A stretch of 64,000 nucleotides of DNA, taken from contig LSRY02000040.1 in assembly GCA_001643675.2 (NCBI GenBank), forward strand, positions 806,001 to 870,000. The letters run 5' to 3'. The notes beneath the pieces were generated by a model that was given only the letters and a program-made list of their open reading frames with translations, did not search any database and was not told the origin of the DNA. Made by a program: the position numbers and the translations under genes. Each line of letters opens with the position of its first letter. The first letter of the stretch is position 1. Positions 2,038 through 62,040 of the stretch are shown here, piece by piece. The DNA is from Monocercomonoides exilis PA203. Its lineage: Eukaryota; Protista; Preaxostyla.

Positions 2038-2071
<34 letters not shown>

Positions 2072-5000: not shown

Positions 5001-8000
5001 GGCAACAACGCACATTCTCGACCACCCAAAGAACCCACTCATCCGCACAGGGACGGTTCCAGCCATGCACAATGCATCGACCACGTTCCTCTCTTCTCAC
5101 TCAGAGGTGTCTGTGGTCAGAACAATTCCTTCACCACTTTCAATGAGGAATGGATGTGGGGTGAATGAAAGTGACGGAGGAAGGTCGACGCAGAAGGATA
5201 TTGATTCGTCGCCTCAGCTTGTGTATTGCATTGATTCTGAGCCTGAAGAAAAATTCAACGTTGAGTTGAATAAAACATCAGAGCAAAGAGAAAATGAAGA
5301 GCAAGGAGTATCCTCAACGACTTCTGCTTATTCCTCTTATTCCACTTCTTCCTCTTCCTCTTTTTCATCATCATCTTCTTCATCATCTTGTTTTTCTCCT
5401 GTTTTCAATCATTCATCCTCTCAGAGTGTCATTAATTACGGTCCAAATGGTCAGCAATGCAAACAGCAATCATCCCTTTTGAATGGACTTTTGTCGCCAA
5501 AACGCGACCGTTTGAAGGAAAGCAAGTTTCCACTGCTGAATTCATCCCACTCGCAAATGTCACTGCTTCCTGCAATATTCCGGTTTAACACATCTTATTC
5601 CTCGCCTCCACTTTCACCACAATCGCCTGTTCTTTTGCCAAACAGGACAAACAACTTCGGTGCCAGTGGATTATTAAAAGGGAAAAACTTCAGCAGAAAT
5701 GAAACAGGCATGCTGAGTCCCACTGGGTTTCTGTCTCCCCCACTCCATTCTCCGCCAATTCATTCTGTTTCAGAGGCTCAACTTAGTGCTTTGTTCCCCT
5801 CACTTCATCCTTGTTCACCCGAATCATCTCCTCAAAGAGAGCAACATTTGTCATCTCGCTCAGAACACCGCCCTCCACTGCTTCATCCCACATCCCAATT
5901 TCCATCGATGAAAGAGCTGCCTCAGAACTCATTTGATTCATCTGAAAGCATCCTCTTTGATAGCATCGGTGTGGCTCTTCCCAGGTTGCCTTCTTCTGCT
6001 GCTCTGACAGACTGCCACTCCAAGGAAACAGAGCAAAAAGGGGAAAGCGAAGCAGAAGGGAAGAATTCGAGTGTGTTTGCTGTGGGAGCAAACGGGATAG
6101 TTCGATTGAAGCCAGAGAAATGCAATACATTAATGCCCATGCAAATAGCCAGCCCTCCTATCCACTCTCCTCCTGTGTTCTCTTCTTCTGCCTCTGCGTT
6201 TTCGAGATATGTGCCAGCAGACTTCCAACAGAAGGGATTTGCACTTTTGGGGATGCAGAAGATATCGTCACGAGAGGAAATGCAGCAGAATGAAAACAAT
6301 TCTATTCAGGAATCTGTGCCATCTTCTTCGCCTGCTTTGTCATCTCCTCATTTTGGAAGTATTGGAAGTCTGTCTGCAGAAGCTTTTGCTGGAATCAGTG
6401 CTTGTGCCAAAAACAATAATAACGTGAATGCCACTTCCAAGATTGTGAATCAATCTCCTCTTCGTTTCGATTCCAAGCCAGAGGAGTCAGACGCATCTGC
6501 CTCCACAAACACCTCTGGAAAAACTTCAACAGAAAGAGAAGGAACACTCTCGGACATCAAGTTTGCACCACTGAATGAAAATCGCTATTTGGAGAAAGAA
6601 GAAAACTTGACTGTTGGCAATGTTAATTCAGGAACAGAATCACATTCAACTTTGAAGATCATAGATATGCTTTCTCACACACCTGTCTCGCTTCCCATTC
6701 CTGAAGCATCGTCTAATTCCATTCATAGAACAACTTCTTCATCTTCCTCATCTTCATCGTCATCTGATCCATTTTCTAATTCTCCGGCAAACAATAATGC
6801 TGAAAAGATGATGCTGTCATCTGCTTCTTCTTCTTCTTCTTCAACTCCTTCTCGCTCTTCTCCATCCTCATTCACTCCCGTTAGCAACTATCTGACTTCT
6901 GCAACAACAAACTCCTGCACATCGCAGTCACCAACATTCTTGTATTTAACTCATCCTTCTCCTTCACCCACACCACGCACTCCGAAATCGTCATTGATGC
7001 ACCGCTTGTGGAGCAAGTTCAAACGTTCTTTTGGAATCACAGAGGCACAGGAGACAGAAGTTGAAGCGATGACTGAAGGGTTGCTGACGTCTCAGCACTT
7101 AAGCATAGTGCAATCATCATCTGCTATCACACCAGGAAGAGCATCTGTGCAAAGCATGACAAAGATACACACAACATCGCATCTTTCAGCAAGTGAAGAG
7201 GAAGATGAAGAAGGAGAAGGTGAGGAAGGGCAGCACAAACAGGAAGCATGGAGTGTTCACAAACAAGATATGCAAAACTGGGAAGTTTGTGGAGATGGTC
7301 GAATAAGCAGCAGTGCAATTGGGGAAGGCGATGGAGATGATGATGATGATGAATCAGAGATGGAGAGGATGCTGTTCAGCCCATTTGACGGTGCAGATGC
7401 TGGAATCACAATTAAGTCATCGAAGCAGCTGCAGATACAGGAAGATCGTTCTGTGTGCGCGAATGGGGAGTTGGCTTCTCCAATTCAGCAAGAGCTGCCT
7501 TTAAAATCAGAAGCATTTAATTTGGAAGCAGACTTGAATGATGCTGACAACGAGCCCGAACACATTCTCTCGCCCACACTTTCAGAGAAGCTGTCACATG
7601 CAAATGCGATTGATTGTCAGCCTCACGGCAAAGAAGTTGTCCAACTTAGAACACTTTCATCACTTCCAGACATGCAAAGAACTTCTCATTCATTAAGTTA
7701 TCAGCATAATTCTCCCTGCAGCGAAAGGCAAATGAGGATGATCCAATCTGTTTCAGTGGCATTAGCAACTCCTGTGCAGGCAGGAATTAGCTTATTCAAC
7801 ACTCCTCATTTTCCTGAAGCGCCATTGTCAGGAGGGTGCCATCTTCACTTGCTTTCTCCTCGTCTTCTTCGGATCTGTGCTCCTCAGCCTACAAATCCCA
7901 TTGTTCGTCCTCATTCGCCCTGCTTTTCTCTTTTTGATTCGCCAAATACTTCTTCCTCTTCCTCTTCCTCTTCTCCTGCTGCAACTTCGTCTTCCAACAA

Positions 8001-8793
8001 TCGGCGCTCTCCAATTTTAGGAGCGCTTTCATCTCCGAAAGTTTATACAGCGATATTGTCTGTAACAACATCAACTCCAACCACTGCTTCCACCTCTTCA
8101 TCAGCCTCGTGTGCCTCAGAAATACCAACTTCCTCGTGCTTATCATCACCTTGCATTTCTTCTGAAGCATCTCCTCAGTTCAGCAGCATTCAAAATCGAT
8201 TTCCCTGCAGTGAAAATGCAACAGGACATGGCATATCCCGTCTTTTATCACAATCTTCAGAGGAGGCAAGAATCGTTCGAGACATTCAGAGCTTCCCACA
8301 GCCCAGTGAAATTAGTTGCGAAGCTGAGAAAAGCCCTCACTCAATTTTCAGTCCAAGCAGTTCCAGCTCTTCTGAAATGTTTTCGCCTCATTTCTCAGCA
8401 TACTATGACGATCTTAGCATTACACACGATGCGACAGAAGAGATTTCGCTACCAGACGGGATTGAAAGCACGCTTCAGAGCGCGAGAAGAGTCGAAGATT
8501 GCGAAAGCAGGTGGAGAATGAAGAGCAAGGAACTTCTCCCTTCGAATGAAGACGAGGAAATAATCAATCTTATGCAGCAGATTGCGATTTTGCAGAAGAA
8601 GAAAAGGAAGAAAACAAAAGCGAAACAGAATGAAGATTGGATGAATGTGTCAGAGAAGCATGAAGAAAAGGATATAATCGGCGGATTATATAACTCGACG
8701 ATTCCGGAGGTTGTGGAGGAAGAAAGGGTGGTAAGCGAGGAGGATGAACAGATGAACAGCAAAGAAGCAAATGAAAGAAACGTAATTCAATAA
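1..8793 (+). CDS. Giant low-complexity (Ser/Glu/Gln/Pro-rich) hypothetical protein, 5'-partial (>2900 aa)
   Basis: The ORF track gives 334..8793, and frame 1 is also stop-free from position 1 to 333. The protein has poly-S, poly-E/K, poly-N and poly-H tracts. No recognisable domain. Confidence 0.75.
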
Positions 8794-10628
8794 ACGAATG
8801 GAATAGAACAACAATCCGAAGAAGAATACGATGATGTTGAATTAAGTCAGAGGAATGATGGATGAAAAAGAACATATTTCACAAAAACAATGAACAAATA
8901 AGTGGGAAAAAAGGATTTGTATCTGATGAGCAGGATGAAAGACGAGGAAGCAGAGGAGCGCTGAGTTCAACTGCCAAAGAAGAAGAAGATGCTGATGAAC
9001 GGCTGAGCAGAATTCGGGGCAAGCTTCGATGTGAAGGATGGATTGACAGCTCAGCATAGCAGATTGAGCTTGGTGGGTGGGAAAACGGGCAGATGTTCCG
9101 CTTGCCAAGTGAGAGCATTTTACACACAGTTATGCAACGAACGATGGCGTGTTCAGCAACATTGCAAAATCGGATTGTCAGAGAGAAGAAAGGATCAGAG
9201 GTAATGAAAGAGAAGGAACAGCTCGCATCAGCAGATGAAGAAGAGATTAGCTGTCATTCGAAGGAATATGAAGTGAGGCTTGGATCAAAAGTTGCAAAAT
9301 CAGAGCGTGTTATATTGGCTCATGAAGATCAAAAGCCAGGACCAGGTTCGCAGTTACTCTGGAGCAATGACGGTACAGGAAAGGCCTGTTTGCAGATGCA
9401 TCCAAGCGCAATTACAAAAGACAATTCTACTCAAACATCTTCTTCTGCTTCCTCTTCTTCTTAGGCTTTGTTGGCATCTTTGTTGATTCATTCAACACAA
9501 CCAATATCTATAAGCCAATCTCAGAAAACGAGAAATTTCAGCAAAGATTCGAAGGGGAATGGTTATTCATGGAGCGATCAGTCCACTCTTCGTTCAGCTT
9601 CTCAGCAGTACGCACCTCAGACAAGTTCATCTGATGCGTTAAAAATAAAGAGCAGCATTCGAATAGCGAATGTTTTTCGTGGAAATGTTGATGTCGACGA
9701 GCCATTGATTCTCGAACAAGTTCAGCAAATGCAAAAAGAAAAAAGGAAAGAAGGTGCTTTTTCAGAAGAAGGACATAGGTCTGGAAAAAGAAAGCGTTGA
9801 ACGCAAAAGTCTATTGAAAGAAGCATTAACTGAAAGTCCTTTTAATGCAGTGAGAAGCAGCTTGCAATAAACATTAACGAATTTTTTTGTTTCGGATGCT
9901 GTAATGCCTTCTCTTTTATCTCCATCCTTGACATCGGAATCCCCTCTCCAAAATCTGTTTCGTTTCGCAGGATCTCATGGAGATGAGTTTTCAGCATCAC
10001 CAAGGCTGTCTTCTGATGAGGAAGCATAATCTTTGAACCATCACGTTGCATCTTCTTCATTTGCTACTTTTCATGGTTTCTGCTATTAGAATTGAACAAT
10101 TCGCTAAGCAGCCTATTTTGGTGGTGAATTGATGGAATTTGAAGGATGCATGAAGAAGGGAGTGCAGAATTGTTCTGGCAAAATTTTGTCTTTTGATAAT
10201 AAAAACACAATTTTGATTGGTGAAGAGATTATAAAAAAACTGTGATGTGGTTGTAATTTGTCTTGAACAACTGCAAACAATGGTGAAAGCACTTGCACTG
10301 AAAAAAAAATTGACGAAAAAAATATAACGAACTGCAAAAGTTGTGAAAAATGTGATTTTTTATGGATCCACACTGAAAGTGGAATTGAATAAAGTGTTCG
10401 TCTTTGTTCATCGTCTTCGGGTCTTCAATACACTGTGAATGGGCAAACGTATTTAATGGAGTTTCTTTTGACAAGCAAGAGGAGTGAGGAACTGTGCCAT
10501 CCAAAGATGAAGACATGAGAAATGTGAAAGCAATAATGTCAACAGATTTTGGATTATCACCTTTTCAGAAGGATGTTAATGAGAGTGGCAGAGTTGTTGG
10601 CGATGCGCGCAACGAAATGCCCGAGTGA
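8794..10628 (+). pseudogene. Degenerate coding-like continuation of the giant ORF
   Basis: Coding-like composition continues past the TAA. ORFs 8862..9059, 9093..9464 and 9468..9800 share one frame and are separated by single TAG stops; more TGA/TAA stops follow. AT-rich intergenic DNA starts at ~10680. Confidence 0.45.
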
Positions 10629-30325: not shown

Positions 30326-32094
30326 AAATCATTAATTTATTACAGCGAAACAGAATTAAAAAGTTTTTTTATTATTCTTTATTTTTTTGATTATTTTTCT
30401 TTCATTTTTCATTTAAAAAAATTTTTTTGTGAATTATAAAATGAAATATGTTTTTTTGAATGATTTTTATTTATTTTTTAGATGAAAAAGAGTTTCGAAC
30501 CGCAGAAAGCTGACTTTGAAGCCATAGCTCTTGCATCTGCGAAAACTCGAGACGCAAAAAAACAAGTTTGATTTTAGTTTAAATTTTTTTTCTTTAAGTT
30601 TTTAGTTTGAAAATTTCTCTTAATTACTGGTGTTGAATTAATTTATAAAATATCAGATTTCGCAACAAATGAAAAAAAGCCAGAAGATATTGCGAAGCGA
30701 TTGAGCAATACAGTGTGTTATGAAATAAATTCAAAAAAAAGAAGAATTAGAAAAAGAAAATATAGAAAATAAAAAACAAAATAAACAATTAAAATAAAAA
30801 TTAATAAATAATAATAATTAATACAAAAAAGTGAAACAAATATTTATTAAAATCATTGAATTTAAAAAAGCAAATATGAAAATATAAATTCATTCAAATA
30901 AAAACATAACAATACATCATCAACTTTTATCTATTAAAGCTCAAAGGCTGCATCGTTGTGTGATGGGGGGAATATTGGAATATTGACAAATACAAAAACA
31001 AATTTCATCATAAATGATTTTTTCAATAAAATAGAAATGAATAAAAAAAAGATAGAAAAGAAAAATATTAAAAAAAATGAAGAAAAAGAGAAAAATGAAG
31101 AATATGAAAATAAAGAAAAAAATGAACATAATCTTCAACAAAAAAATGATAAAAAAAATATGCACATATAGATAATTAATAGGCCTGGTTGACGGATTGA
31201 AAAACTGACGGTTGCGTCAGTCAGTGGAATATTTTCACGTCAATTGGCCTTTTTTCTCTCTCTTTTGATTTTTGAGGCAATAAACACAAATTTTATTGAA
31301 TAAAAATATTAATTATTTAAAAAAATAGCCATGCAATGTTTTTCTTTTTTCAACAAAAGAAAGAAAATATTATGAACCACAATTCGAATAAAACTGATTC
31401 TGAGAAATATCTTTTTGCAAAAACACGCTTACAGTCAATGATAGCTGATTGGTTTGCATATTGTTGTATTTTGCTATTATCTGTAAATGTTCTTCTTTCA
31501 GGCAATCCAGTGGAAATTTTCGAAAATAAACAAAAAGTGGAACATCTTGTTCATCTGAATGAATATCGAGTTTTTTCTTCAAATTCAAGAAGAAAGTTCA
31601 CAGGATGAAGAAACTTGGAAGTGAAAACTGAGAATCAGATGATGAAACATTAGAAAAAGGAAGGAATAATGAAATTGATAAAGAAAACAGTTGCCAATGG
31701 ATGAAAAACAGAAAATTTGCTTATAGAAATGTTTTGAAGGTTTGATATTGTTATTTTTTTGAAGTGATTATAATTATTTTATTCAGGATTCTGAAAGAGA
31801 GAAGGAGTGGATGGCTTTGAAGAAGAAGAAAAGCGAAGAAGAAAAATGAAATGAAGATTGATGAAATGAAAGTTAAATCGAAGATGCCTTCCATTGGGCT
31901 TTGGCGAAGAATTATTTTTGAGGAAAGATGATTTTTTTTGTGAAAGAAGGGGAAGTGAAAGAAGAAGGCATGGTATGAAAAAGGGAACGCTCAATTTTTC
32001 ATATTTTTGGCATAGGTGTATTTAAGGTCCATTTCCAATCCTTGTTAATTCTATAAATCATTGTGATAAACAAAAAGAAGATTTAATAATAAAA

Positions 32095-35000
32095 CATTTG
32101 TATGGACTAGAATTTTGAAATTCGTTTTGTTCCTTGAGAAAAAACGATTTTTTAAATCACCCATAAATAAGAGTATTATTTCAAATTTTTGATAAAAATT
32201 GATAATTTCGAAATAATAAGTGGATAAAAGGTTGTTAATTATTATATACTCTTATTATATTGATGATTTTTCAATAAATAAAACATTTTGAAAAATAAAT
32301 TAAAACAAGAAAATTATTTGATCTATCCCACAATTATATTTTTAATAACCAAAAAAGAAGACCTTGCTTTTTCTCATCATGCAATAAACACCCGTTAATG
32401 ACCATTAGAGAAATATTAAATATGTATTTTATAATAAAATGTGTAATTAATGATTGTTTGTATTTTATTCATTTATGTTTATAAACAAATTATAATTTCA
32501 GTAATAAATGAAATATATAAGATGTTTAATCAATTGTGTTTTTGAATATTGTTATATATATTTGTTGATATTATTTAAATGAAAAAAATCTCATTTTATT
32601 CGTCAACAGAACTTTATGCAGTTGTTTTTTCATTTCACAAATCATTTCGAAATTCGTTTGTTCAATTTTCAAGAGAAATGAAAAAATAGCGTTAACATTC
32701 ACTCAACGGTATTTCATTCGCAGTGATCATCAACTGCAATTTTTGAAAAATGTTATAAACTTTGATTTATTGATGGATAAAATAAAACAGCACAACTTTC
32801 ATAAAAATTTCAAAAAATTGAAAAACAAACATCATTTAAAATTCTCAACAATTGATGAATTGATTAAACTATCAATATTCGTAAGAATAAGAATTTGATA
32901 TCATTTCCGTCAACAATTGAATCACTTCTGCCAATTTGGGTCTGTCATTCGGCTTATCTGCCCACGTCTTCTCCATCAGCTCAACCATTTCTTCTCCTTC
33001 GATTCCTTCTGTCAGCAGTCGCACCCCATCCCTCATCATCTCCTGCGCTTCTTCTGCATCATACTCGCTCAAGGGTACTTCGCCTGTTGTCATCTCATGG
33101 AGAATCAGTCCAAGTGCGAAAACAACTGCCTTTTCTATTCTCTCTTCTTCATTTCCCACTTCTGGTTCTTTCCATCGCTTCATTTCTTCCTTCTGATTTT
33201 CATCTTCCAATTCCTCTGTCAACAAGTATATTTCATTTTCGTTTCCTTCCCCAATAAAGATTGAATATGGACACAATCGTTTCCCCATCATTTCCACTCT
33301 TTCATCATCAACCGAAATCAAATGCTCAAAAAGTCCTGCAACTGCCAAAACCACTTCCTTCCCATCAACAACATCCATCGCTCTTGTTCCTAATGTAAAA
33401 TTACCTTGAACTGAATGAATCACTGAGTGCAATGTTTTGATGTTCTTTTTCTCCTTCTCTCGAAATGGCTTCTTTGCTGATATAATATTGAATGAATGAG
33501 ATTGAGGTATTCCAGAAACAGAAGCGTCCTCAGTCAATGGCAATGGAGATTCCAAATCTGGCAGATCATTTTCATTTAGAATGTCATCGGTCATTAATGG
33601 AGGCTCTGGAAGATCTTCTTCATCATTGTCAATGAGAAGTGGAATTTGGCTCGTCATTCCTTCCAGCAATGTTGATGGAATGTCACTCATCTCAAAGCTT
33701 CCTCCATTGTTTTCCCTTCTTCTCCTCTCAATCTTCCCCATTATCTCCTCGTTTTCCAATCTCTCTTTCTCAACTTTCTTTTCTGATTCTCTCAGTTTCT
33801 TTCGCTGAACCACAGCCATCACAACAATTACGAACAATAGAATGATTACAACTACAACACAGCCAATAAAGGCAAATTAACTCCATTCAAATTTGTCCTC
33901 TCCTTTTGAGATTCTTTCATCTCCCTTTTATTCAGATTCACTTGTATTCTTCAGAATGAATGACTGAGTTGATGAAGGAGATTCTGCATTTCCAAATAAA
34001 ATATGCACACTCACCTCAACATCATTTCCACAATTGCTGATCAAATCTTTTCCCACACTTCCTTCAACTTTTCTTTCTGATAGAAATTCATTTGAATCAA
34101 AATCGTGTTTTTCAATCTCTTTCTCTTCTCCAAAACTCTTCACAACTGAGAATGACAGATTGCATGGAACAAAAAGCATTCCTTTGAATATCAATTTCAT
34201 TCTATCTGTCTCTTCTTTTGCCTCCACACTTTCCAGTACAGGAATGAAGAATGATGAATCTCTTTCTGAAGCAATCCCTTCAAAACTGCACCCATCATTC
34301 AACATCCAAAGAAAAGTGTCATCCTTTAATCCATCTCCTCCTTTCAAACTCATCACATTCAATGTTCCTGAGCTTGAACAGATGATATTTCTTCTCGATG
34401 ATGGATATCCTTCAATCGATGGATTATTGTTTATAAACTCTCCTTTCTCAATTATCGCATTTCCTCCACTTATTGATATTCCACCTTCTGGTGAATTCGA
34501 GATTGTTGTGTCTTTCATCATCACAAAACTCTTCACAACATCCACAAGAGATCCATCCCATCTGCACATCTCTTCTTCCTCTTCATTCAAATATTCCTCG
34601 CGTCTTTCCTTTGAACTTCCATCAAAAATGCAACTGTCCATTTTCGGATTTGTGCAATTCTCCACTTTCATCAATTTCCCTTTTTTGGTCTTTGAACCGA
34701 CTCCACCTATTGTGCAATTTGAAAATTGCATCGTCTTTTTCATTGACAAGCAAGATATTAATGTTTCTTCATTTCCTTCAACTGTGATATTTTCTGAGTT
34801 GAAATTCTTGATTGTTAATTTTCCACATTCATGAATAATTATTAGAGAAGTTTCAATTGTTGAATTGCAAATCGATAGTGAATCGATTACTAATGCAAGT
34901 TGTGAAGAAAAATGTAATGCAGATTCTTGAAGAATGAGATTTGATATTGTGCATCCATCAAGTTGTAATTCTCCTTTTTCCATTTGAATAATGTGAAATG

Positions 35001-36827
35001 GAATATTTGCATCCACAACTTTTCCATCTTCTATTAATGCTTTGATGTGAATGAGCAATTCACCACTTCAAGAATCCCTCCCACTGGTGATATCAATGAT
35101 TCATGTGTGGAGGTGAAATTTGATTCAAACACAAAGTTCACTCTCACCAATGAAACTGTTCCTGTTGTTGAAACCAATATCTCTCTTGTTCTTTCAATCC
35201 CTGTTTCCACCTCAACTTCACACAATCCTCTGCTCTTCGAACTCAAACTCATCTTCTCCCAAATTGATCTCTCCGCCAATCATGCTCTTTGCCGCAATGA
35301 ACATCAGACGAACAGATTTTGATATAAGATGCACCAGGCCATGATATATCGAATAACAAGGAAACGCATAACTTCCACACCACAATGTGTAATGTCCATC
35401 TGCAGATACAGACACAACTATCCACTTCAAAAAAACGAGAAAAACTCGCAGATCCATTTCTTCATATTTTCCATCCTCCCCAACAAATGCATTTCCATCA
35501 TCCTTGTAATATGTGCAATCAAATGCAAAACGCTCTGTATTCACACTGTTCACCAGATTGCTGCTCTTCACAAACATGTTCTTCCCAACTGTTGCTGAGC
35601 ATCCAAAAAATGATATCGATGAAAGCTAAAATGCTTCTTCATTCAGAATGAAATCCAGATATATCCCTCCTCCTTTTCCTCCCTCACTTCCGTTCTCACA
35701 AACACATCCAGCAAATGAACTATTTTCAAGTGCAACATATCCAACTTCGCTCAATGCTATTTTCAGAGCTCCTCCTTCTTTGCTCTTCTCTGACAATGCC
35801 CCATCAATTCTGCTTCCATTCATCGCCATCCCAATTCCCAAACTGCCTCCAAATACTGCTGCCTCTGTTCCTTCATCAATTTCCAATCCTTCCAGTGAGC
35901 AATCCAACAACTTTACTTTGTATTCCTGTTCATTCATATTTGCTGAGGAAAGAGAGAATGAAAACAACAATACTACTAATTTTTCTTCTGAAATCGTGAC
36001 AGAATCCAATTCAACCATCTTTCCTGTCAATTTAATCAAGAAAAATCCAATTGTGTTTTGCTTTCCTCCAACCACATTCATAGCGCAGTTCTTCATGTGC
36101 AACTCGCCATTATGAGTGTTTGATTCGATCACTGATGTGATTGTTCTGTAAAAACTTGATGGATTAACAATCTCAACGTACATCATTTCTTTTTAACCTT
36201 GCGCTTCTTTTGCTTATTTTCACTCAAATCGGCTATATCACTTAACATTTAACTATTTTCAAAAAAAAATAAATAATATTTTATGAGTTTTGTCAAAAAT
36301 TTTAATGAAACGGTGTTTATTATTGATTAAAATGTTTCGCACACTTTATAAGAGCTTCTATATTCATTTTCAACATGGTCTAAATAGGATATCCAACCGC
36401 TGCACAAAAGTTTTCATCCAAAAAATCATAAACAAAAATCATAAAAATTTGAACGATACATTGATAACAATTCATCGCACACTTTTAAACTACATTTATA
36501 TATATGATTTGTTTTATGTTCGAAAGCGAGGGTTCAATTCTTGACGAAAGAAAGCAAATTCCAAATTTAAGGATTTTAAAAATATAATTGTGGGATTGAT
36601 CAAAATATTTAAATTTTTCAATTTATTTTTTTTAAATGTTTTATTTTTTGAAAAATCATTAATGTAATAAGAGTATATAATAATTAACAACCTTTTATCC
36701 ACTTATTATTTCGAAATTATCAATTTTTATCAAAAATTTGAAATAATACTCTTATTTATGGGTGATTTAAAAAATCGTTTTTTCTCAAGGAACAAAACGA
36801 ATTTCAAAATTCTAGTCCATACAAATG
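32095..36827. mobile_element. 4.7-kb nested element with long inverted arms, carrying a surface-receptor gene fragment
   Basis: 32095..32257 appears identical to the revcomp of 36665..36827 (163 bp). Similarity decays inward to ~32345/36577. It interrupts the left TIR of the 10-kb element. Confidence 0.85.
32872..36186 (-). pseudogene. Surface-protein family member: beta-helix-like ectodomain, TM helix and degenerate kinase-like tail; 5'-truncated
   Basis: Collinear ORFs 35626..36186, 35218..35577, 35034..35279, 33928..35058 and 32872..33837. Motifs: GGKGGGIYL, WCGSYAFPC, TM FAFIGCVVVVIILLFVIVVMAVV, and kinase C-lobe-like VFALGLILHEMTTGEVPL and DRPKLAEV. Two in-frame TAA stops near 33870-33930, plus frameshifts. 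Confidence 0.8.
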
Positions 36828-37761
36828 GGTCATTCTTTTTGAAAAGTCGCAAACATTTAACTGATCTGAAAAAGAGATCGAAAATGATCAAAAAATGTTG
36901 ATCATTCCGTTCCCATTATTGCTAAAAAAATATTATCTTTTGCTATTTATTTCCCTTATCACTGAGAAATGTTTCATAAATCTGATGATGTCATATCGAA
37001 CGTTAATTATTTAATAGAATACGCTTTTGTTAGATCTTCTTTCGAGCTATTTAAATCAAACATGTAATATGTTCATATATCTTCATTTTCATTTCATTCG
37101 TTTCAATTCACGTTTTTATATTCTGACAAATAACAATATTTTAACATTTCTTTTTGTTATTAGCAAATTAGATATTAATATCTATCTTCCAATATTATTA
37201 TTTTAGAAAGTGATAAAAAGCAAAAATACATCAAAACAAAATGCACAACAATTGAAAATCATTCAAACAGTTGTTCTCATTGAGAACAAATAAATGTTTT
37301 TTTTATAAAATAAAGAGGCATTTCTACAAATTAAACACAGAAAAGCGTAATCATGAAAAGTTCGAAAAAACATGTTTTTCATTTTTATTGTTTAAAAATG
37401 AATAGTGTTCTTTGATTCTTTCATTTTCTTATAAATCTTTTCATTCCTCAGCTGTCACATTCTATTTCGATACAATTCAAGAATAAAATGTGTTCTGTTC
37501 TTCATTGTGTGTTAACAATTTGTTTTTTCACCTTATAACACTTTCTTCTTTGGAAACTGAATCAAGACTTGTGTTTTCAATGCATTGCTGCAATTATTTC
37601 TTCGAATTGCACCTTCGTCTTCCTCATCTTTTTCAATTGGATAAGGATGCCAGTCTGCTTCTCCATTCCGGAGGCGGAGAAGCGAAGAGAAGAAAGAAGC
37701 AGTAGATGATCAGTCATCTTCATCTTCATCATCAGCACCTGTAACCAACACTTCAAATGCC

Positions 37762-38615
37762 TTGGCAGTGGCTGCGTCATTCACTTCGGCAGAAGCGATG
37801 GGTTTCATCAAGAGACGGCTTCAGATTGTGGAGCCTGAGGCGGCTGGGGTGTATGCGCGGCAAGCGGTGCTGTATGGGGTTGTTGCGTTTGAATACGATG
37901 TGGTGCTTCCTGCGATGCTTTCTATATTGCTGGTGGCACCCCTTCCTGCTCCTGCAGCGTCGGTGGGAACGAAGTCGGGGATCAAGCTGATCTTTGCAGT
38001 GGCAGATGTGAATGCGTTCCTGTCGATCTTCGATCTGTTTGGCCCATCGCTGCTGCAGTCTGCGATAGCACGGCTGGTGTCGCGCTCACTGTAGTCGAGG
38101 AGTGTGGTGGTGAAGCTGGAGGACGAAGTGATGGGACGAGAGGTTGCCGTGCGTGAAGTGGGGGAGATTGTGGAGAGGGGCTCTCGGCGGAGGGGTTGAG
38201 GATGGAGGATGTGGTTATGTCGCTTGCAGCGATTGCGCTGGCGGTGCTGGAGGAGCGGGAAGAAGTAGAGGAAGGAGAAAAGGGAGGCAAAGAGGTAGAA
38301 GAAAAGGGAGAAGAAGATGGAGGCAAAGATGGAGGGAGAGAGGGAGGTGATGGGAATGAGGAGAAAGGCGTGTATCCGACAGCTCACAGAGAGTTTGTGG
38401 AGAGAATCAAAGAGAACCAGGGGAAGCTGGAAGAAGCGATGGCGCCGCTGGTTGTGGAGGCGCTTGGGCTGAGTGGGCTGAGGTTTGTGAAGGCTGATGC
38501 TGAGGTGGGTGCAGACAAGCAGCATTCTGTGAAACCAGAAGTGTGCAGTTCTTCTTAATCCGATGGCATTCAACAGAAGATTTCAAGAGCAGCAGCAGCA
38601 GAAGAAGAAGAAGAA

Positions 38616-38650
<35 letters not shown>

Positions 38651-39600
38651 CATTTGAGAAGAAGGGGCGAAGGAGGTGGGGAAGCAGAAGACTGAGGAGG
38701 AGGAGGAGGAAGAGTAGGAAGAGGAGGAATAGGAGGAAGAGGAGGAATAGGAGGAAGAGGAGGAAGAGGAGGAAGAGGAGGAAGAGGAGGAAGAGGAGGA
38801 AAGACTGAGTACACATTGAAGAACGGAGCGACGAAGTTGTTCTATCTGGTCGAGGGCTGATGAACAGTGTCATGAACCAAAAAGGCAATCAGCGAATGAT
38901 GCGTGTGCGAATTGCACACGGGCAAACTTTGGATGTGCTGGGCAATCTGAACATTAACATGCCCAGAAGCTGTGGGAAGACGCAGGTGAAATGGTGGAGA
39001 TAAAGCTGAGGAACAAAGCCGAAGAGAAATCTGTCTCTGGGGCTGTGCGAAATCCTCATGCAGCATGGGACAGAGAAGAAGCAGGGATGAAGCAGGTGAT
39101 TGTGGAAGACTTGGCGGTTATGTTTTTCACCCTTGTTGAATAGTCCGAGCACAAAGCAGAGGAGTACGAGTTTGTGTGTGGCATCTATATTTGCAAGGAT
39201 GAGTTGATCCGCCTTGCGAATGCGCACATTGTGATGAATCAACGGTTACTGTTCTGTGGAGTTACAGCGTCTATTGTGATAAGGCACAGATGATTCGGCG
39301 AAGGTGAAGTTCACAACGGAGAAGGGAATTGAGGCGGAATGGCAGAGTGGAGAAGGAGCAGAATCAGGTTAGGTGAAGGAGATGCCGAGAAATTGTTCAG
39401 CGATGCTTTCAGCGCATGCGTTTGAGGGTGTGTTTGATGGGGCGTCTGATGCGGATACACAGCTGACTTGACTAGGTAAGTGAATGAAGGCAGAGGTGCA
39501 GAAGGATCGGAGGCCGGTTCATTCAAAAAGTTAGACAAGAGGCTCTGTATCGAAGAGTTGTTTATTCAAAGAAGACAATCGAATGTGTCCAAATGATAGG
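37762..39600 (+). pseudogene. GC-rich degenerate host-gene fragment(s), helical/HEAT-like, product unknown (cargo of the 10-kb element)
   Basis: GC-rich codon-like DNA with ORFs 37762..38094 and 38196..38558, broken by stops and frameshifts. Confidence 0.4.
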
Positions 39601-39756
39601 GGAATGCGGCTTTGATGCTTCGTTCACCATTTCTATCGGACGATGCTTTCTCAGTGGTTGTTCCGATGGATGCTCCCATGGCATTGAAGATGGAAGCAAA
39701 GAATGTGCAAGATAACTTTGTTTCTTCTTTCTATTCTTTTTCTTTATCTTCTTCTT

Positions 39757-39997
39757 CCCCCTCTTCTTCCTCTTCCCCATCTTCTTCCTCTTCCCCCTCT
39801 TCTTCCTCTTCCACCTCTTCTTCCTCTTCCCCCTCTTCTTCCTCTTCCCCATCTTCTTCCTCTTCCCCCTCTTCTTCCTCTTCCACCTCTTCTTCCTCTT
39901 CCACCTCTTCTTCCTCTTCCACCTCTTCTTCCTCTTCCCCCTCTTCTTCCTCTTCCCCCTCTTCTTCCTCTTCCCCCTCTTCTTCCTCTTCCCCCTC
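39757..39997 (+). repeat. 18-bp tandem repeat (CCCTCTTCTTCCTCTTCC; SSSSSP/T), ~13 copies
   Basis: Read directly. Confidence 0.85.
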
Positions 39998-40495
39998 TTT
40001 TTCCTCTCTTTCTCCTTCACCTTCTTCTTCTTCTTTTCTATCATTTTTATTTTTCATTCCTCCTTTCTCTTTCTCTTTCTTCTTCCTCTTCTTCTGCTTG
40101 TGCTTCTGTATCTGTAAATGTATCCGCTTCTGCTAATTCTGCTTTATGCGTAAATGAGGAAGAGACTACACAAGTTGCGAAGTTCCAGCAAGCAGAGTTA
40201 ACGAAGGAACGCCGAGAGAACAAATTTCAACTCTTGGCGCCTTTTCTATATGCTCAAAGTGCGCAAAACCATTTATTTTTGGTTTATTCGCTGTGTCTGT
40301 TTGGGTGTCAAGGAAATAAAGCAGGCAGCGATGCATATGAGTGTACGAGAGTTGTTTTTTTGGAGACTGTATATGAGATTAAACAAGATAATTATTTTGT
40401 TGCAGCTACGTTTGAAGAAAAGCAAACAGACGTTTGTGTGTGACAGGCTAGCGTGGAGATGGAGATAAAGACAATCTGAAAATGGGTAATTCTTC

Positions 40496-40556
40496 TTATT
40501 TGAGCAAGGATACAATAAAAGTGCTGTTAATGTGTGAGATGCAGATAGTTGTTGAA

Positions 40557-40592
<36 letters not shown>

Positions 40593-41425
40593 AGAAGAAG
40601 AAGAAGAAGAAAAGGAGGAGGATGAGGAATAGAAGAAGAAGAAGAAGGTGAAGAAGAAGAAGAAGATAATGATGATGAAAGAGAGAAGATAAGTTTCAAT
40701 AATTCTGTTTCAACACTTGCTGTTATCATCGCTGAGTTTGATGTTGAACTTGAATCAGAGACTGTCCAGCCACTATGATCATCATTTCCTTTTATTTCGT
40801 GTTTCTGTTCATCAAATGCCAATTCATCGCTCATCAAAATCATTCCATTCACAACAACTTTCTTTTCTTCTGTTTGTCGTGTGAGTGAGTGCTTCATTGT
40901 CAAACAAGGGAAGTGAACAATTCCACAATGTGAGTGATCGGATGCCTCAGCATTACTCACATATATTTCTACTGGTGTGGGAAGGAGATAGATGCACAGA
41001 GGAATGGCCACGCTTGTGTTTCCATTGTTGTATCCTCTCACCTTCTCAAGAGAATCCAAGGAGGCTTCCACACATGTAATGTTTACTGATTTTGCAGTCA
41101 CTTCTAGATTATGAGAAAGAACAAAGATGTCTCTGCACCATTTGGCTGTGTTTATTCCAAAAGAAGAGGATATCAGGAAATCTGGATTTTCAGTCAATAA
41201 TTGAAGAAGAATTCCTCCCCCAAATCCATATGTTGCAGAGCAAAAGCATCCTTCAAAAGATCCACCTTTCACTTTCACTTCATTTTCATTCCCAACACAC
41301 AGCATCATCGATCCCCCATCAGCCGATGTTCTGCTTCCACATCCTGAAATTGCTCTCGAATTCAGATCTTTGTTAATTATGCCATTGAAAAAACAAATGT
41401 TGGCTGTCAACTGTGAACTTTTCAA
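40496..41425 (-). pseudogene. Internal ectodomain fragment of the Cys/GGG-rich surface-protein family (cargo of the 10-kb element)
   Basis: GGSFEGCFCSATYGFGGGILL and DHSHCGIVHFPCLTMKHSL. Truncated at both ends, running into a microsatellite. Confidence 0.7.
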
Positions 41426-41897
41426 AAAAAAGAATGATTTAATAATAAATTAAAAATACAATATTTTTGTAAAAATTAAATGCAAACCACTAAATTTATT
41501 AAATTTTCAGATGTATCGAATATATGTGCTCAATTTTCGCATTTATTTCATTTTCATGTGTATAATGCAAATGAAAAATGCCATTAATTTGAAATTTAGA
41601 ATAAACATAAAAAATCAAATTTATCTGGAAAAAAAAATCGAAACACGCCTTGCTCATTTCATTGATAAACAATTGCAAAGCAGTTCAATCGGGTGAAACA
41701 CTTTTTCATGGAAAAATTGATATTTTAATTTAGATAAAAAAATTTGAAACATAATTTTTTGTTAAAGAAAATATCTTTTCAAAAAGAAGTTTGCTATGAA
41801 CAAACAAACATCAGTGTGAAAGTTTCATATATTTATTTGTATTATGGAAACGGAGTTTTTTTTTATTTACTTTCATGGGACAGAATTTTGATCTGCA

Positions 41898-42012
41898 GCG
41901 ACTTTTCATAAAGAATGACCAAAATGTTTTATTATTAAATCTTCTTTTTGTTTATCACAATGATTTATAGAATAAACAAGGATTGGAAATGTACCTTAAA
42001 TACACCTATGCC
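41898..42012 (-). repeat. Right TIR of the 10-kb element; also the empty-site reference for the nested insertion
   Basis: The revcomp reads …AATAATAAAA CATTTT GGTCATTCTTTATGAAAAGTCGC, joining both flanks of 32095..36827. Confidence 0.88.
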
Positions 42013-42378
42013 ATATTTTTTGATAAAAAGAGAGAGAGAGATTGAGTTGAAAGTGAAAATTGTTCAGAGATTTCTCCTTTGCAGAAGAAAAAGGAACATA
42101 AGACAAGAATTTCAAAGAATTTCTCCGTTGACAACAATTGACTCTCATCTTCTCAATTTTCAAAAATTAATCATCTCATTCAAAGCATTCATCACAATCA
42201 TTGTCTTCTGGATCTTCTTTAAATATATCATCAACAATTCACACAACTTTTTCTTCTTCTTCTTCTTCTTCTTCTTCTTTTGTTAATTTGACATGTCTGT
42301 TTTCAATTGAGTTAAGGAATTATCTCAGGAATAATTTGAACGTAAACGAACGATGGAATTTTTTTTGGTAATTTTTTG

Positions 42379-57375: not shown

Positions 57376-60300
57376 TTGTTCGATGAAGATCAATGTTCTT
57401 TGACCTTCGACAAATTGAAAAATGACTTGCATGGGAAAATTGCGGATCTCCTTTCATTTCAAAAAAATCATACAGAGCAACTTAATGAATCTTTTGAATA
57501 TGCAAAGTTGCATTCAACTTCATTTGAATTGAAAAGTGAGACTTCAAACGCAGGTTCAACAGAAAGTCCTTGCTTCTGCATTGCAACAAATTGCCCTTTA
57601 ACAAATTTTATTTGCTATTTAAAGCGATATGAAGACAAAAATAAACAAGGAAACAATTTTTCGACTTCTTCGAAAGAGCGCCAACGAAAAAAGCGTGACG
57701 AAGAGTGTATACAAAAAAATGACAGTCTTTGGCCTTGCCAACCAACATGTGGAAAAGGAAAATCAACGCTTAATTTGATAAGAAAGATACATTCTATCTT
57801 GAAAAAGAGTCGTGACATGGGAATTTCCACACCGACTCACCCTGCACAAAAACCTCCATATTCGAGCTTTGAAAAGTTTCACAGAGAATCTTTTTTCGAA
57901 TCGTCTTCGATTGATTCAGCCCAACAATGCGATGTCAAGATTTCTGAATCAAAAATTCAAAATAAGAGTTTGGAATTGTTTCAAAGTGAAAATCAATCAT
58001 CAAATACCAAAAGCCATTCGAAGCTGCAAGCGCCTTCTCTTTACACTGCAATGCCGTTGACGGACCTTCTTCATTCACCAGTAGTTCATGCAACAGCCAA
58101 GCTACATCTTACGTCTCATTCATCAAACCTTTCCTCATTTAGCCACTCTGAAGAGGATAGAATTTCCACAACTGCAAATGCTTCTTCTTCCTCTTCTTCT
58201 CCCTCTTTTTCCTCTTCGTCTTCTTCTTCTTCCTTCAATTTTCCTTCAGGAATCCTTCCTCCTCTTCCCTCTTCGCCTTCTTCGACTTATTACACCAAGT
58301 CTTCACGCCTTCCTTCACCTCCTCCATTGCGCCTGCAATCGTTTCACATGCGTCTGAACAAGAGCTGCTCTTCGGATGCCTTTTCCCAGCTGCCTCCTCC
58401 GCCATCACCGCCTTCTCCTTATTTTCTTTCTGCTTCTGCTTCTTCTTCTTCTTCGCCATCTTCTTTTTCTTCTTCACCGTCTTCTTCTCCTGCAACGTCA
58501 TTCAAACAAAATAATTCTTGTACCAATTCTTTCAAGTATTTAAAAGAGAAAGAGAAAGAAGAGGAAGAGGAAGAATACGAGGAAGACGAGGAAGACGAGG
58601 AAGACGAGGAAGAAGAAAAATCTGTAAAAAATGGAAGGGAAGATATCGAAGAATCTGTCGCAGAAAAAGAAGAGGAACGCAAACACTCATTTTTCACTGC
58701 AGGTGTCGGAAATTCGCCTCTTTCTCCGATTTTTATTTTCTCGCATGCAACACAGAGGAAGGAGAAGAAGAAGAGTGTAGAGAAAGAAGTTAAAGTTGAA
58801 GAAGAGGAAGAAGAAGAAGATGATGATGAAGGATTTGATTCAAGTGCAATGAAAACACCAAAACGCACAAAATTATTGAAACACTCGAAATTTAGTGAAA
58901 AAGGAATATTTTCAGAAATTTTTGCAAAAGACGGACTTTCTCACGATGTCCAAAAGGAGACAAAAGCAGAAAATGAGAGGAAAATGAAGGAGCTCATTGG
59001 GAATATTCGCAAGGCTCAGAAAAAGAATGAAGGAGAAGCCAACGATGAAGAGAACAAAAGAGAAAAGGAAATATTTTCAGAAATCGAAGGAAAAACAGAC
59101 AGAAAAGAGGAGATCGAAGAAGAGGAGAAAAAGAAAGAAGAGGAGAATCGAAGAGAAACAGAAGGAGAAAAAGAAGAGCGGAGAAATAAAGAGAATAAAG
59201 AGAATAAAGAGAAAATTGCAAAAGGAAAAGGAGATGAAAATACCAATTCAATTGAAAAAGAAGAAGAAGAAAAAGAAGAAAAATCAATAATGGATGTTAG
59301 TGACAGTGAAAGCAACTTGAGTGATGTTAGAGAAGAAAGAGAAGAAGAAGAAATGAAGATTGAATACATTAATACGAATAACGTTGACTCAAAAGCAAGA
59401 AATGAAGAAGAAATGACAGAAATGGATGAAAGAGGAGGAAAAAAAGGAGGAAGAGAAGGAGAAGGAGAAGGAGAAGGAGAAGGAGAAGGAGAAGGAGAAG
59501 GAGAAGGAGAAGGAGATAATGAAGAGGAGGAGGACGGAGAGAAGGAGGAAAAAGAAGAATTTGATGGAAATGCCGAAGAAATCTGCAGTCATCAGCAAAG
59601 AATGTTGAATAAGAGCAATAGAAGATCTATTTTTGAGCAGCAAAATGAATTCAAAAACGACAGAGAAGCTGAAATGGATGATGAAGTTTCAGATGAAGTG
59701 GACGGAGAGGAAGAGGAAGAGGAAGAGGAGGAAGAGGAAGAAGAAAAAGAAGAAGAAGAAAAATTCGAAGAAGAAAAGGGTGAGATAAAGGCAGACGATT
59801 CAAAAGAGGGCAAAGATATTGAAGAATCACATGTGAAGGAAAATGATCAGTTTCTTTTCGAAGACGAGGAAGAAGGAGAAGAAGCATGGGAAGCGTGCAA
59901 TGAATCAGGAATATTTGAAGAGGAAGCAGTCAGAAAGGATTTGTTAACACAGGAAAAGAGAAAAATAAGCAGCAAAGAAGAGGAAGAGGAAGAGGTTGAG
60001 GAAGAGGAAGAGGTTGAGGAAGAGGAAGAGGAAGAGGAAGAGGAAGAGGAAGGTGAGGAAGAAGAACAAGAAGAAGAAAGAGAAGAAGACGAAAAAGTTA
60101 AAGCAGAAGAGGAAATGGAACCAACAGAGAGGGAAGGAGAAGGAGAAAGAGAAAGAGAACAAGCAACGGACCTCTTCTGGACAAACACATCAGCCTCATT
60201 CAGTTCGCTGGATGATTCGCTGGATGATTCGACCTCTTTTTCGCTTTCTGTGAAAGAGTCGATGGAAAGGAAGAAGAGGAGGAGGAAGAGGAAGAATGAG

Positions 60301-62040
60301 GAGGAAAAAGAAAAGGGGAAAGAGAAAGAGAAAGCGAAAGCGAAAGAGGAGAAAAGGAAGGAGGATATGGAGGATATGAAGAGTTTGGAAAGGAAAACTT
60401 CTTTGGTCCAGAAAAAAAGAAAGAAAATCAACACCAACGGACTGAAGAATGAGATTCGAAAGGAAGAGAATGCAAAAGCAGCAAAAGCCAAACAAGATTT
60501 GAGCATTCATTCAAGGCATTCAAATGGCCAAGTGAAAGTTAATTCAACTCGTCTCTCGCCTTCCTCAAAGATTTTCGAACAAGCGAAATCAAACAATTCT
60601 GATAAAGCCAGAAATCCTTCAACATCGTCGTCATCATCAACTTCTTCTTCTTCAGTTTCTTCTTCTCTGCAATCAGCAAAATCATCACAAAAGCTGAATG
60701 ATAAACGGACCAAAATCCAATCAAAGCCAAAAGTATCGCAAAGAAAGCAATCAACAAAGGCATCATCGTCTGTGGCATTGGCAACTGCTCCATCGAGAAT
60801 TCAGCCAAAAAACAGAGCAAAATCAGCACAAAATGAGCAAAAATCACAAATTAAACAGAAAGAAACAACCGAAAACAAGCCAAGGTGGAACTGTTCAGCC
60901 AATCCGGCCAGCAGGCAATTGAAGCAGAAGCCAGCAATGTTTTCGGTGTTCTTTCAGAAAGAGAAGAAGACAGAAAAAGAAAAAGAGAAGGATAATGAAA
61001 AAGAGAAGGAAAAGGAGCAAGTGAAGAAAGAGAATGAGAAAATTACATCAGATTCTTTTGAAGGTGGCATAGGAAAGACGAATGAAAAAGAAGATGAAAG
61101 AAAAGAAATAGATTTCTTGAGCAGACAAGAATCAGTTGCTGAAGAAGAAAAAGATGCGAAACAGAAAGATTCTGAAGCAGAAAAAGAAGAAGCGAAAAGA
61201 AGTTTTGCAAAAAAAGGAAAAGAAAACGAAATGTTGAGTAATGTTTACCCATCGGAGCAAGTTTCGGAGGCAGAAGCTGCAGAAGCAGAATCATTGAAGA
61301 AGGAATTGAGAGAGGAGAAAAAGATGACAAAGCAGACTTCAAAGCAACATAAGTCAACAGCAACTCCAAAGAAAACAGCACTTTCGGCTGCAAACAAGAA
61401 GTTTATCCATCTTTCTGCTCCTTCTCAAACAGAATCGGATGCAAAAAAAGAAATGAATGTTCATTTGCATCCAGTTGATGCTGAAAGAAACCAAAACAAA
61501 CAAAGAAAAGCTCTTTCCCCCAAAATTGCAAAAGATGTTCAAAAGCCCAACGAAGCCGAAAAAACAAGCAAAAATGCCAATCGAACAAAATCGAGTTTCA
61601 GAAAATTTGTGCCAAAGAAGATAAGGCAGCTGGGCACGTTGAGAGAAATGTTGGAGAAGAAAAGCAATTTGACAACAGAAACAATTGGGAAAGCAAATGA
61701 TCGTCAAGCAATTGACAGCCTGTTGAATGCATCTTTGAGTTCTCGGCTTTCTTCCTCGCGTTCTTCTTCTGCCTCAGCTTCTGCTCTTGTTTCTCCGCAA
61801 AGAATGCGAAATTCGTGTTTGACATCAGAAAATATAACACCTCCTCCAAATTCTCTCCATCTCAGTCAATCTCACTCTGTTTTAAAAGAAGATTCGCTGA
61901 ATTGTTTGTCGAGTACTTACTCTTCCCAAAGTTCGTATATGACTTCTCCTCCTTCCATTCCTGTTCGCATGCAGAACCCACATCCCGTCACTTCTTACGC
62001 CTCTGCATTCATCAAGCGAATATCTTCTTCTGCTCATTAA
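57376..62040 (+). CDS. Large low-complexity Glu/Lys/Ser-rich hypothetical protein (~1550 aa); true start uncertain
   Basis: Uninterrupted 4.6-kb ORF beginning at TTG, so an upstream exon is likely. No recognisable domain. Confidence 0.75.
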   Translation: MFDEDQCSLTFDKLKNDLHGKIADLLSFQKNHTEQLNESFEYAKLHSTSFELKSETSNAGSTESPCFCIATNCPLTNFICYLKRYEDKNKQGNNFSTSSKERQRKKRDEECIQKNDSLWPCQPTCGKGKSTLNLIRKIHSILKKSRDMGISTPTHPAQKPPYSSFEKFHRESFFESSSIDSAQQCDVKISESKIQNKSLELFQSENQSSNTKSHSKLQAPSLYTAMPLTDLLHSPVVHATAKLHLTSHSSNLSSFSHSEEDRISTTANASSSSSSPSFSSSSSSSSFNFPSGILPPLPSSPSSTYYTKSSRLPSPPPLRLQSFHMRLNKSCSSDAFSQLPPPPSPPSPYFLSASASSSSSPSSFSSSPSSSPATSFKQNNSCTNSFKYLKEKEKEEEEEEYEEDEEDEEDEEEEKSVKNGREDIEESVAEKEEERKHSFFTAGVGNSPLSPIFIFSHATQRKEKKKSVEKEVKVEEEEEEEDDDEGFDSSAMKTPKRTKLLKHSKFSEKGIFSEIFAKDGLSHDVQKETKAENERKMKELIGNIRKAQKKNEGEANDEENKREKEIFSEIEGKTDRKEEIEEEEKKKEEENRRETEGEKEERRNKENKENKEKIAKGKGDENTNSIEKEEEEKEEKSIMDVSDSESNLSDVREEREEEEMKIEYINTNNVDSKARNEEEMTEMDERGGKKGGREGEGEGEGEGEGEGEGEGEGDNEEEEDGEKEEKEEFDGNAEEICSHQQRMLNKSNRRSIFEQQNEFKNDREAEMDDEVSDEVDGEEEEEEEEEEEEEKEEEEKFEEEKGEIKADDSKEGKDIEESHVKENDQFLFEDEEEGEEAWEACNESGIFEEEAVRKDLLTQEKRKISSKEEEEEEVEEEEEVEEEEEEEEEEEEGEEEEQEEEREEDEKVKAEEEMEPTEREGEGEREREQATDLFWTNTSASFSSLDDSLDDSTSFSLSVKESMERKKRRRKRKNEEEKEKGKEKEKAKAKEEKRKEDMEDMKSLERKTSLVQKKRKKINTNGLKNEIRKEENAKAAKAKQDLSIHSRHSNGQVKVNSTRLSPSSKIFEQAKSNNSDKARNPSTSSSSSTSSSSVSSSLQSAKSSQKLNDKRTKIQSKPKVSQRKQSTKASSSVALATAPSRIQPKNRAKSAQNEQKSQIKQKETTENKPRWNCSANPASRQLKQKPAMFSVFFQKEKKTEKEKEKDNEKEKEKEQVKKENEKITSDSFEGGIGKTNEKEDERKEIDFLSRQESVAEEEKDAKQKDSEAEKEEAKRSFAKKGKENEMLSNVYPSEQVSEAEAAEAESLKKELREEKKMTKQTSKQHKSTATPKKTALSAANKKFIHLSAPSQTESDAKKEMNVHLHPVDAERNQNKQRKALSPKIAKDVQKPNEAEKTSKNANRTKSSFRKFVPKKIRQLGTLREMLEKKSNLTTETIGKANDRQAIDSLLNASLSSRLSSSRSSSASASALVSPQRMRNSCLTSENITPPPNSLHLSQSHSVLKEDSLNCLSSTYSSQSSYMTSPPSIPVRMQNPHPVTSYASAFIKRISSSAH

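Follow-up and report, generated by a model that had tools for sequence, protein, structure and literature searches.

A receptor fragment-bearing Merlin transposon very probably split by a second transposon in Monocercomonoides exilis

Introduction

Merlin transposons are known from Monocercomonoides sp. PA203, in which more than 100 copies in at least seven families have been described, with 8-bp target site duplications (TSDs) and terminal inverted repeats (TIRs) of 23-29 bp (PMC8101967). Across the superfamily the TIRs measure 24-462 bp and have a conserved terminal 5'-GG (PMC8101967). Merlin TSDs are 8 bp (or 9 bp) long. Here we describe a locus of M. exilis PA203 that lies in a 64,000-nt stretch of DNA, referred to as the window (positions 806001-870000 of contig LSRY02000040.1). 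The segment from 32009 to 42012 of the window is very probably one non-autonomous Merlin element of 4,905 bp, with a broken receptor-like gene as its cargo, which was later split in its right TIR by an unrelated transposon that we call X.

The Merlin family of the window and the published Monocercomonoides families share the DDE_Tnp_IS1595 transposase, 8-bp TSDs, 5'-GG TIRs, the occurrence of many degenerate and transposase-less copies, and the host species (PMC8101967). They differ in the length of the TIRs and in their content. The published families have TIRs of only 23-29 bp and no cargo has been described for them (PMC8101967), whereas in the family of the window the TIR is ~340 bp long in the window copy and 850-2,700 bp long in the copies that bear a transposase. 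In the latter copies the two TIRs of a copy are 97-100% identical, and their length exceeds the 24-462 bp quoted for Merlin. Furthermore, receptor-gene fragments occur in most copies of the window's family; this family was compared with the published families F1-F7 by description and not by TIR sequence. Cargo-carrying Merlin elements were not found in the literature searched, which is weak evidence of their absence.

Two other described systems are relevant. The Pack-MULEs and other Pack-type elements of plants are non-autonomous TIR elements that contain a fragment of a host gene and are moved in trans, as the window element would be. Pack-MULEs belong to Mutator, whereas the window element is a Merlin. 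Pack-type elements capture their fragments privately, whereas the fragment in the window was inherited through a lineage that includes autonomous copies. Its ratio of nonsynonymous to synonymous divergence (dN/dS) of ~0.3 also contrasts with the value of ~1 associated with Pack-type elements. The second system is that of ordinary nested TIR transposons. As in these, X is located in a Merlin TIR and has a 4-bp duplication of its own, and the reverse case, a Merlin in an X end, exists at another locus (L031). Unlike in ordinary nesting, two sets of inverted tips are adjacent here, which gives the appearance of a composite TIR.

A sequence-only reading of the window had interpreted this arrangement differently. 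It regarded the block 32095-36827, with its perfect 163-bp inverted arms, as a second and unrelated vehicle for a receptor-kinase-like gene that had inserted late into an outer element, and it took the restored outer TIRs as an internal empty-site control. We examined these claims with searches of the M. exilis PA203 assembly (82.3 Mb, 101 contigs). This assembly is nanopore-based with a reported read N50 of 8.9 kb (PMC8767320). Repeats make up 46% of the genome; 35% of the genome is "unclassified" repeat, which overlaps a very large protein-tyrosine-kinase family (PMC8767320). TSDs, cargo and arms of the Merlin family were compared in a sample of 15 of its ~29 copies. Other genomic loci fetched for comparison carry L-numbers (L031-L040, L048, L058 and L062-L077).

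Results and Discussion

The inverted arms extend outward to a Merlin tip

The inverted arms lie at 32085-32319 and 36603-36837 and are complementary over 235 nt (92%). They include the perfect run of 163 nt, at 32095-32257, that had been noticed before; the first mismatch is at 32258. When the arm was searched against the genome, 113 candidates were obtained, of which 40 were scored; these are 81-94% identical and mostly form plus/minus pairs that are 2.4-15 kb apart. This confirms that the arms are neither unique to this locus nor unpaired elsewhere.

When the ends of 11 other copies and of the window copy were aligned (24 arms), the similarity extended 86 bp outside of position 32095 to a sharp tip, GGCATAGG, which is present in all of the copies compared; the flanks beyond this tip are unrelated among the copies. 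The 86-bp tip is directly attached to the arm in 59 of the 60 arms examined and is not so attached in one, the right arm of the window element itself. None of the other 59 arms ends at the equivalent of 32095, and no TSD flanks 32095/36827. Positions 32095 and 36827 are not the termini of a mobile unit.

The tip that is absent from the right arm is found further downstream. The 86 bp at 32009-32094 recur inverted at 41927-42012 with 97.7% identity. The tip motif GGCATAGG occurs 58 times in the genome (30 on the plus and 28 on the minus strand; 0 for the control). At least 23 pairs of tips are spaced by no more than 15 kb; within the region of the window element the motif is present only at 32009 and 42012. 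The octamer ATATTTTT stands immediately outside both of these tips, at 32001-32008 and at 42013-42020, and represents an 8-bp TSD. Perfect 8-bp TSDs were found directly outside the tips in 10 of the 15 sampled copies, the window unit included.

These data define the ends of the element to the base. The left TIR (~340 bp, plus strand) occupies 32009-32348, and the arm of the sequence-only reading is its inner part, beginning at 32095. The right TIR, on the minus strand, is in two pieces. Its inner part (arm positions ~88-340) is at 36574-36826 and its outer 91 bp, displaced by 5.1 kb, are at 41922-42012. The block 32095-36827, which had been considered an independent unit, is thus the body of the Merlin element together with the inner 250 bp of its TIRs, and the locus contains one Merlin vehicle rather than two.

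The element belongs to a family with an IS1595-type transposase

Six loci with the same ends as the window element (L031-L036; 7.8-9.5 kb) all contain a transposase. In L032 the open reading frame (ORF; 4464-5564) encodes 366 amino acids with a CxxC...CxxC motif in the N-terminus; it matches the Pfam domain PF12762 (DDE_Tnp_IS1595) with an E value of 5.4e-20 (72 bits, cut-off 27) and the NCBIfam model NF033547 for IS1595 transposases with 87.6 bits (cut-off 75). Six PF12762 matches lie inside tip pairs of this family. The ORF list of the window holds no transposase ORF within 32009-42012. The family is a Merlin because an IS1595-type DDE domain, which is encoded by the same-ended copies and not by this copy, is combined with 8-bp duplications and 5'-GG tips, the features that define the superfamily. 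hAT, P and MULE, the other superfamilies with 8-bp TSDs, are ruled out by the transposase of the same-ended copies. The expectation that copies with the same arms would enclose a transposase was hence borne out, with the difference that the enzyme is of the Merlin/IS1595 type and not that of a MULE, Kolobok or Crypton.

PF12762 has at least 575 candidate matches in the genome, and all of the 150 that were scored exceed the Pfam cut-off. This number is several-fold above the 'over 100' Merlin transposase copies of the older assembly.

The right arm is interrupted by element X

The right Merlin arm is split 91 bp from its tip by X, a 5,095-bp non-autonomous TIR transposon with tips GGGTCATTC..., which occupies 36827-41921 on the plus strand and is collinear end to end with the copies L071-L073. 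The 23-nt tip of X occurs 500 times on the plus and 495 times on the minus strand of the genome (~995-1,000 termini; 0 for the control). The family includes miniature copies of 237 bp and copies of 5-7.2 kb. A 4-bp duplication of the form A-W-W-T borders 14 of the 16 X copies examined. Since the examples include the non-palindromic ATTT, AAAT and AAGT, this is a direct duplication and not a part of the TIR. In the window, AAAT stands on either side of X; its left copy (36823-36826) forms the end of the inner right Merlin TIR and its right copy is at 41922-41925. X is thus a family in its own right, with its own tips, its own TSD and copies in unrelated contexts. The possibility that X is part of a variant Merlin TIR can be ruled out by these 4-bp duplications and by the fact that Merlin sequence precedes none of the 13 other X ends examined, the flanks of which are unrelated.

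Excision of 36827-41925, which comprises X and one AAAT, rejoins the right arm without gap, indel or extra base. Of 254 positions, 250 are the same in the restored arm and in the left arm, and the perfect run increases from 163 to 210 nt; beyond position 254 the similarity is 85% out to approximately position 340, where it fades. Without X the window element measures 4,905 bp, which compares with 4,916 bp for L037 and 4,897 bp for L040; its alignment with L037 is collinear from one end to the other, with 84% identity. The junction between Merlin and X is unique in the genome; only one other match was obtained, which has three mismatches and is the end of an X copy in unrelated surroundings.

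History of the nested insertion

The locus is ordinary nested transposon biology, and the following course of events very probably accounts for it. A 4.9-kb cut-and-paste Merlin copy with ~340-bp TIRs and without a transposase would have inserted here and duplicated the 8 bp ATATTTTT; it would have been mobilized in trans by the transposase that the same-ended family members of 7.8-9.5 kb encode. Later the 5.1-kb X would have inserted 91 bp from the right tip, duplicated AAAT and pushed the tip 5 kb away. The order Merlin, then X, is favored because the excision of X is exact, both elements have their own TSDs, the length of 4,905 bp fits that of the sister copies, and the junction is unique; it is in particular this uniqueness that speaks for an arrival of X after the Merlin copy was in place. 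This order is the reverse of that in the sequence-only reading, since the nested insertion is X and not the block between the arms.

Several observations weigh against this history. Five of the 15 sampled Merlin copies are without a clean TSD. The right tip of X ends in ...ACCA, as opposed to ...ACCC in the family, so that the AAAT duplication assumes one mutated terminal base. X is left without assignment to a superfamily and no transposase that moves it was found, either among the ORFs of the window copy searched with Pfam or in the ORF lists of other X copies; the ORFs of X gave only a weak, sub-threshold match to an IQCH-like ATP-grasp domain. As the window Merlin copy has no transposase, we infer rather than observe its movement in trans. 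Finally, a source copy with the same junction may have existed and been lost, in which case X would have landed before the Merlin copy arrived here.

The last point leads to the alternative that the entire 10-kb composite transposed to this site, with X already present in the right Merlin arm of the source copy. Such a composite would be structurally mobilizable, with both 91-bp Merlin tips intact and the 8-bp TSD around the whole. Nevertheless, the junction between Merlin and X occurs only here and no sibling copy is closer than 84%, which makes this alternative improbable.

Still less probable is the proposal of the sequence-only reading, in which 32095-36827 is an independent long-armed element inserted in the left TIR of an outer element made of the tips and 36828-41920. 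Taken by itself, the window formally allows this reading. A 23-bp motif, GGTCATTC..., adjoins the 86-bp sequence on both sides, and an inverted copy of the 23 bp that follow the right arm is present at 41898-41920; deleting the block therefore places the 86-bp tip beside GGTCATTC and roughly mirrors the right end. To this extent the earlier observation holds. However, the match is inexact, since the right end has six additional bases, CATTTT, after AATAAAA that the rejoined left end lacks, whereas the alternative excision of 36827-41925 is exact to the base. The proposal is also at odds with the missing TSD at 32095/36827, with the other 59 arms, in which the tip is contiguous with the arm and none of which begins at the CATTTGTATGG boundary, and with X itself, for which none of the 13 other ends examined is preceded by the tip and 14 of the 16 complete copies examined have 4-bp duplications of their own. 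The apparent empty site arises because the inverted tips of X lie beside the inverted tips of Merlin.

We consider it just as unlikely that the locus is a chimera, in which 32009-36826 and 41922-42012 come from two Merlin copies joined by ectopic recombination or by a rearrangement that involved X. The family copies without matching TSDs (5 of 15) indicate that recombination between copies does occur. Against this, the 8-bp duplications at the two ends of the window element are identical, which for an AT-rich octamer would happen by chance with a probability of ~1e-4 (estimated from base composition). In addition, no sampled copy is as similar to either tip as the two tips are to one another, and AAAT surrounds X exactly as it would after a simple insertion. 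An assembly artefact or a local fold-back duplication is hardly credible: small indels, for example the two frameshifts in the cargo, could be errors of a nanopore assembly (PMC8767320), but both the arms and X recur as families of many copies, whose ends and duplications are consistent on many contigs, and a 340-bp repeat with copies 4.3 kb apart is well within the read N50 of 8.9 kb (PMC8767320).

The cargo is a decayed fragment of a giant receptor-like gene

The only gene-like feature between the arms is at 32872-36186 on the minus strand. This feature, of ~1,105 codons, is a broken C-terminal part of a giant gene with a beta-helix-like ectodomain, one transmembrane segment and a kinase-like domain, which agrees with the previous description of a truncated gene and identifies it as a decayed member of an expanded family. 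The kinase matches Pfam PK_Tyr_Ser-Thr (PF07714) with an E value of 1.1e-12 at profile positions 158-257, which corresponds to the C-lobe only; the C-lobe alone is also what can be recognized in the sister copy L037. The cargo is bordered within the element by its 3' flank (32349-32871, minus strand), which is collinear with L037 at 89-95%, and by an AT-rich spacer (36187-36573, minus strand) that separates its start from the right arm, is closed in all frames and is 76-93% conserved with L037.

Three in-frame stop codons interrupt the cargo, at 35626-35628, 33928-33930 and 33877-33879. In addition, ~220 nt are out of frame between a +1 shift close to 35260 and a -1 shift close to 35038; both of these single-base frameshifts could be nanopore errors. 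L037 has neither the two frameshifts nor the stops at 33928-33930 and 33877-33879, and its frame is open for 736 codons. L037, with in-frame stops at other codons, and L039 have their own, different lesions. The decay is mostly private to the window copy because its lesions differ from those of L037.

A search of the genome with a 376-amino-acid piece of the ectodomain gave at least 1,686 candidates. The scored matches are 73-81% identical and lie mostly in open frames of 2,600-4,400 codons, from which it follows that the cargo is the C-terminal ~40% of a giant gene. Homologous cargo is present in 12 of the 15 sampled Merlin copies, autonomous ones included, and is collinear in L037; these findings imply that the cargo has been inherited within the Merlin lineage. 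The window element therefore has the interior of a Pack-type element, a host gene fragment without a transposase, while the fragment is an inherited one and not a private capture by this element from a host locus.

In any one sampled copy the two arms share 92-100% identity over their first 330 nt, whereas the best match of an arm to any other sampled copy, outside of the young L031-L034 cluster, is 87-93%. The previous suggestion that the arms are being homogenized is consistent with these values, in that arms within a copy are unusually alike; the arm identities are no more than suggestive of such a process within an element. The synonymous divergence (dS) between cargo copies is 0.15-0.58 and mostly 0.30-0.58, the latter range being several-fold above the divergence of the arms. 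The pairwise dN/dS is 0.26-0.41. These values are unlike those of freely decaying junk and point either to selection in the past or to sequence exchange with paralogues that are functional. One may speculate that the receptor fragment is not inert, and that it is either kept functional for the transposon or undergoes continual gene conversion with the thousands of receptor genes of the host; we regard this as unlikely. If the exchange did take place, the Merlin elements would, as mobile donors and acceptors, contribute to the diversity of the largest M. exilis gene family.

Consequences for the receptor family and for repeat annotation

The Merlin family does not explain the expansion of the receptor family because its ~29 copies stand against at least 1,686 matches and thousands of 8-kb genes. 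The idea of a vehicle that spreads the receptor-kinase-like family was accordingly not upheld. The value of the locus is mostly corrective, as it demonstrates that two neighbouring sets of inverted tips can create the false impression of a composite TIR and of an "empty site". At the same time base-exact boundaries were gained for two repeat families. The long-TIR Merlin lineage with receptor fragments and the non-autonomous X family of ~500 copies, which likewise bears pieces of giant surface-protein genes, would help to annotate the ~35% of the genome that is "unclassified repeat" (PMC8767320). Both families also offer a small tractable system in which to ask whether gene fragments carried by transposons exchange sequence with a huge family of host genes.

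X also carries a gene fragment. A piece of 309 codons (40496-41425, minus strand) is derived from another subfamily of giant genes (~2,600 codons), for which there are 4,275 candidates in the genome.

Additional observations

Two of the transposase-bearing Merlin copies have conspicuous surroundings. L031 (C35:8600-18300) is a 9.4-kb copy inserted into an end of the X family with the 8-bp duplication CATTTGTG; its flanks at ~126-164 and 9553-9606 are the X end, so that this locus is the reciprocal of the nesting in the window. L036 (C16:1003600-1011750), viewed together with C16:1002503-1002934 and C16:1012414-1012845 to its two sides, has flanks that are inverted repeats of each other, and there are identical PF12762 matches on both sides. 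This copy apparently lies inside a larger palindromic Merlin structure.

Elsewhere in the window two long open frames, 334-8793 (plus strand, 2,819 codons) and 57376-62040 (plus strand, 1,554 codons), have no match in Pfam. The first of these was considered as a host member of the receptor family and is unrelated to the cargo.

The tips of the X family have the form GGGT[C/A]ATTC, and the copies (L062-L077 and window 36827-41921) have a GC-rich core of low complexity. In the window copy this core is an island of ~50% GC at 38000-40100 on a background of ~33% GC. It contains long arrays of GAG/GAA-type triplets. In both strands several frames through these arrays are open, and they would encode low-complexity sequence rich in Glu, Lys, Ser and Pro. 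In L048 and L058 a second, related X-like tip is located directly upstream of where X begins; it is oriented head-to-head to the X tip, and ATATG alone separates the two. This arrangement could represent two elements that inserted into one preferred target, or a junction between two tips.

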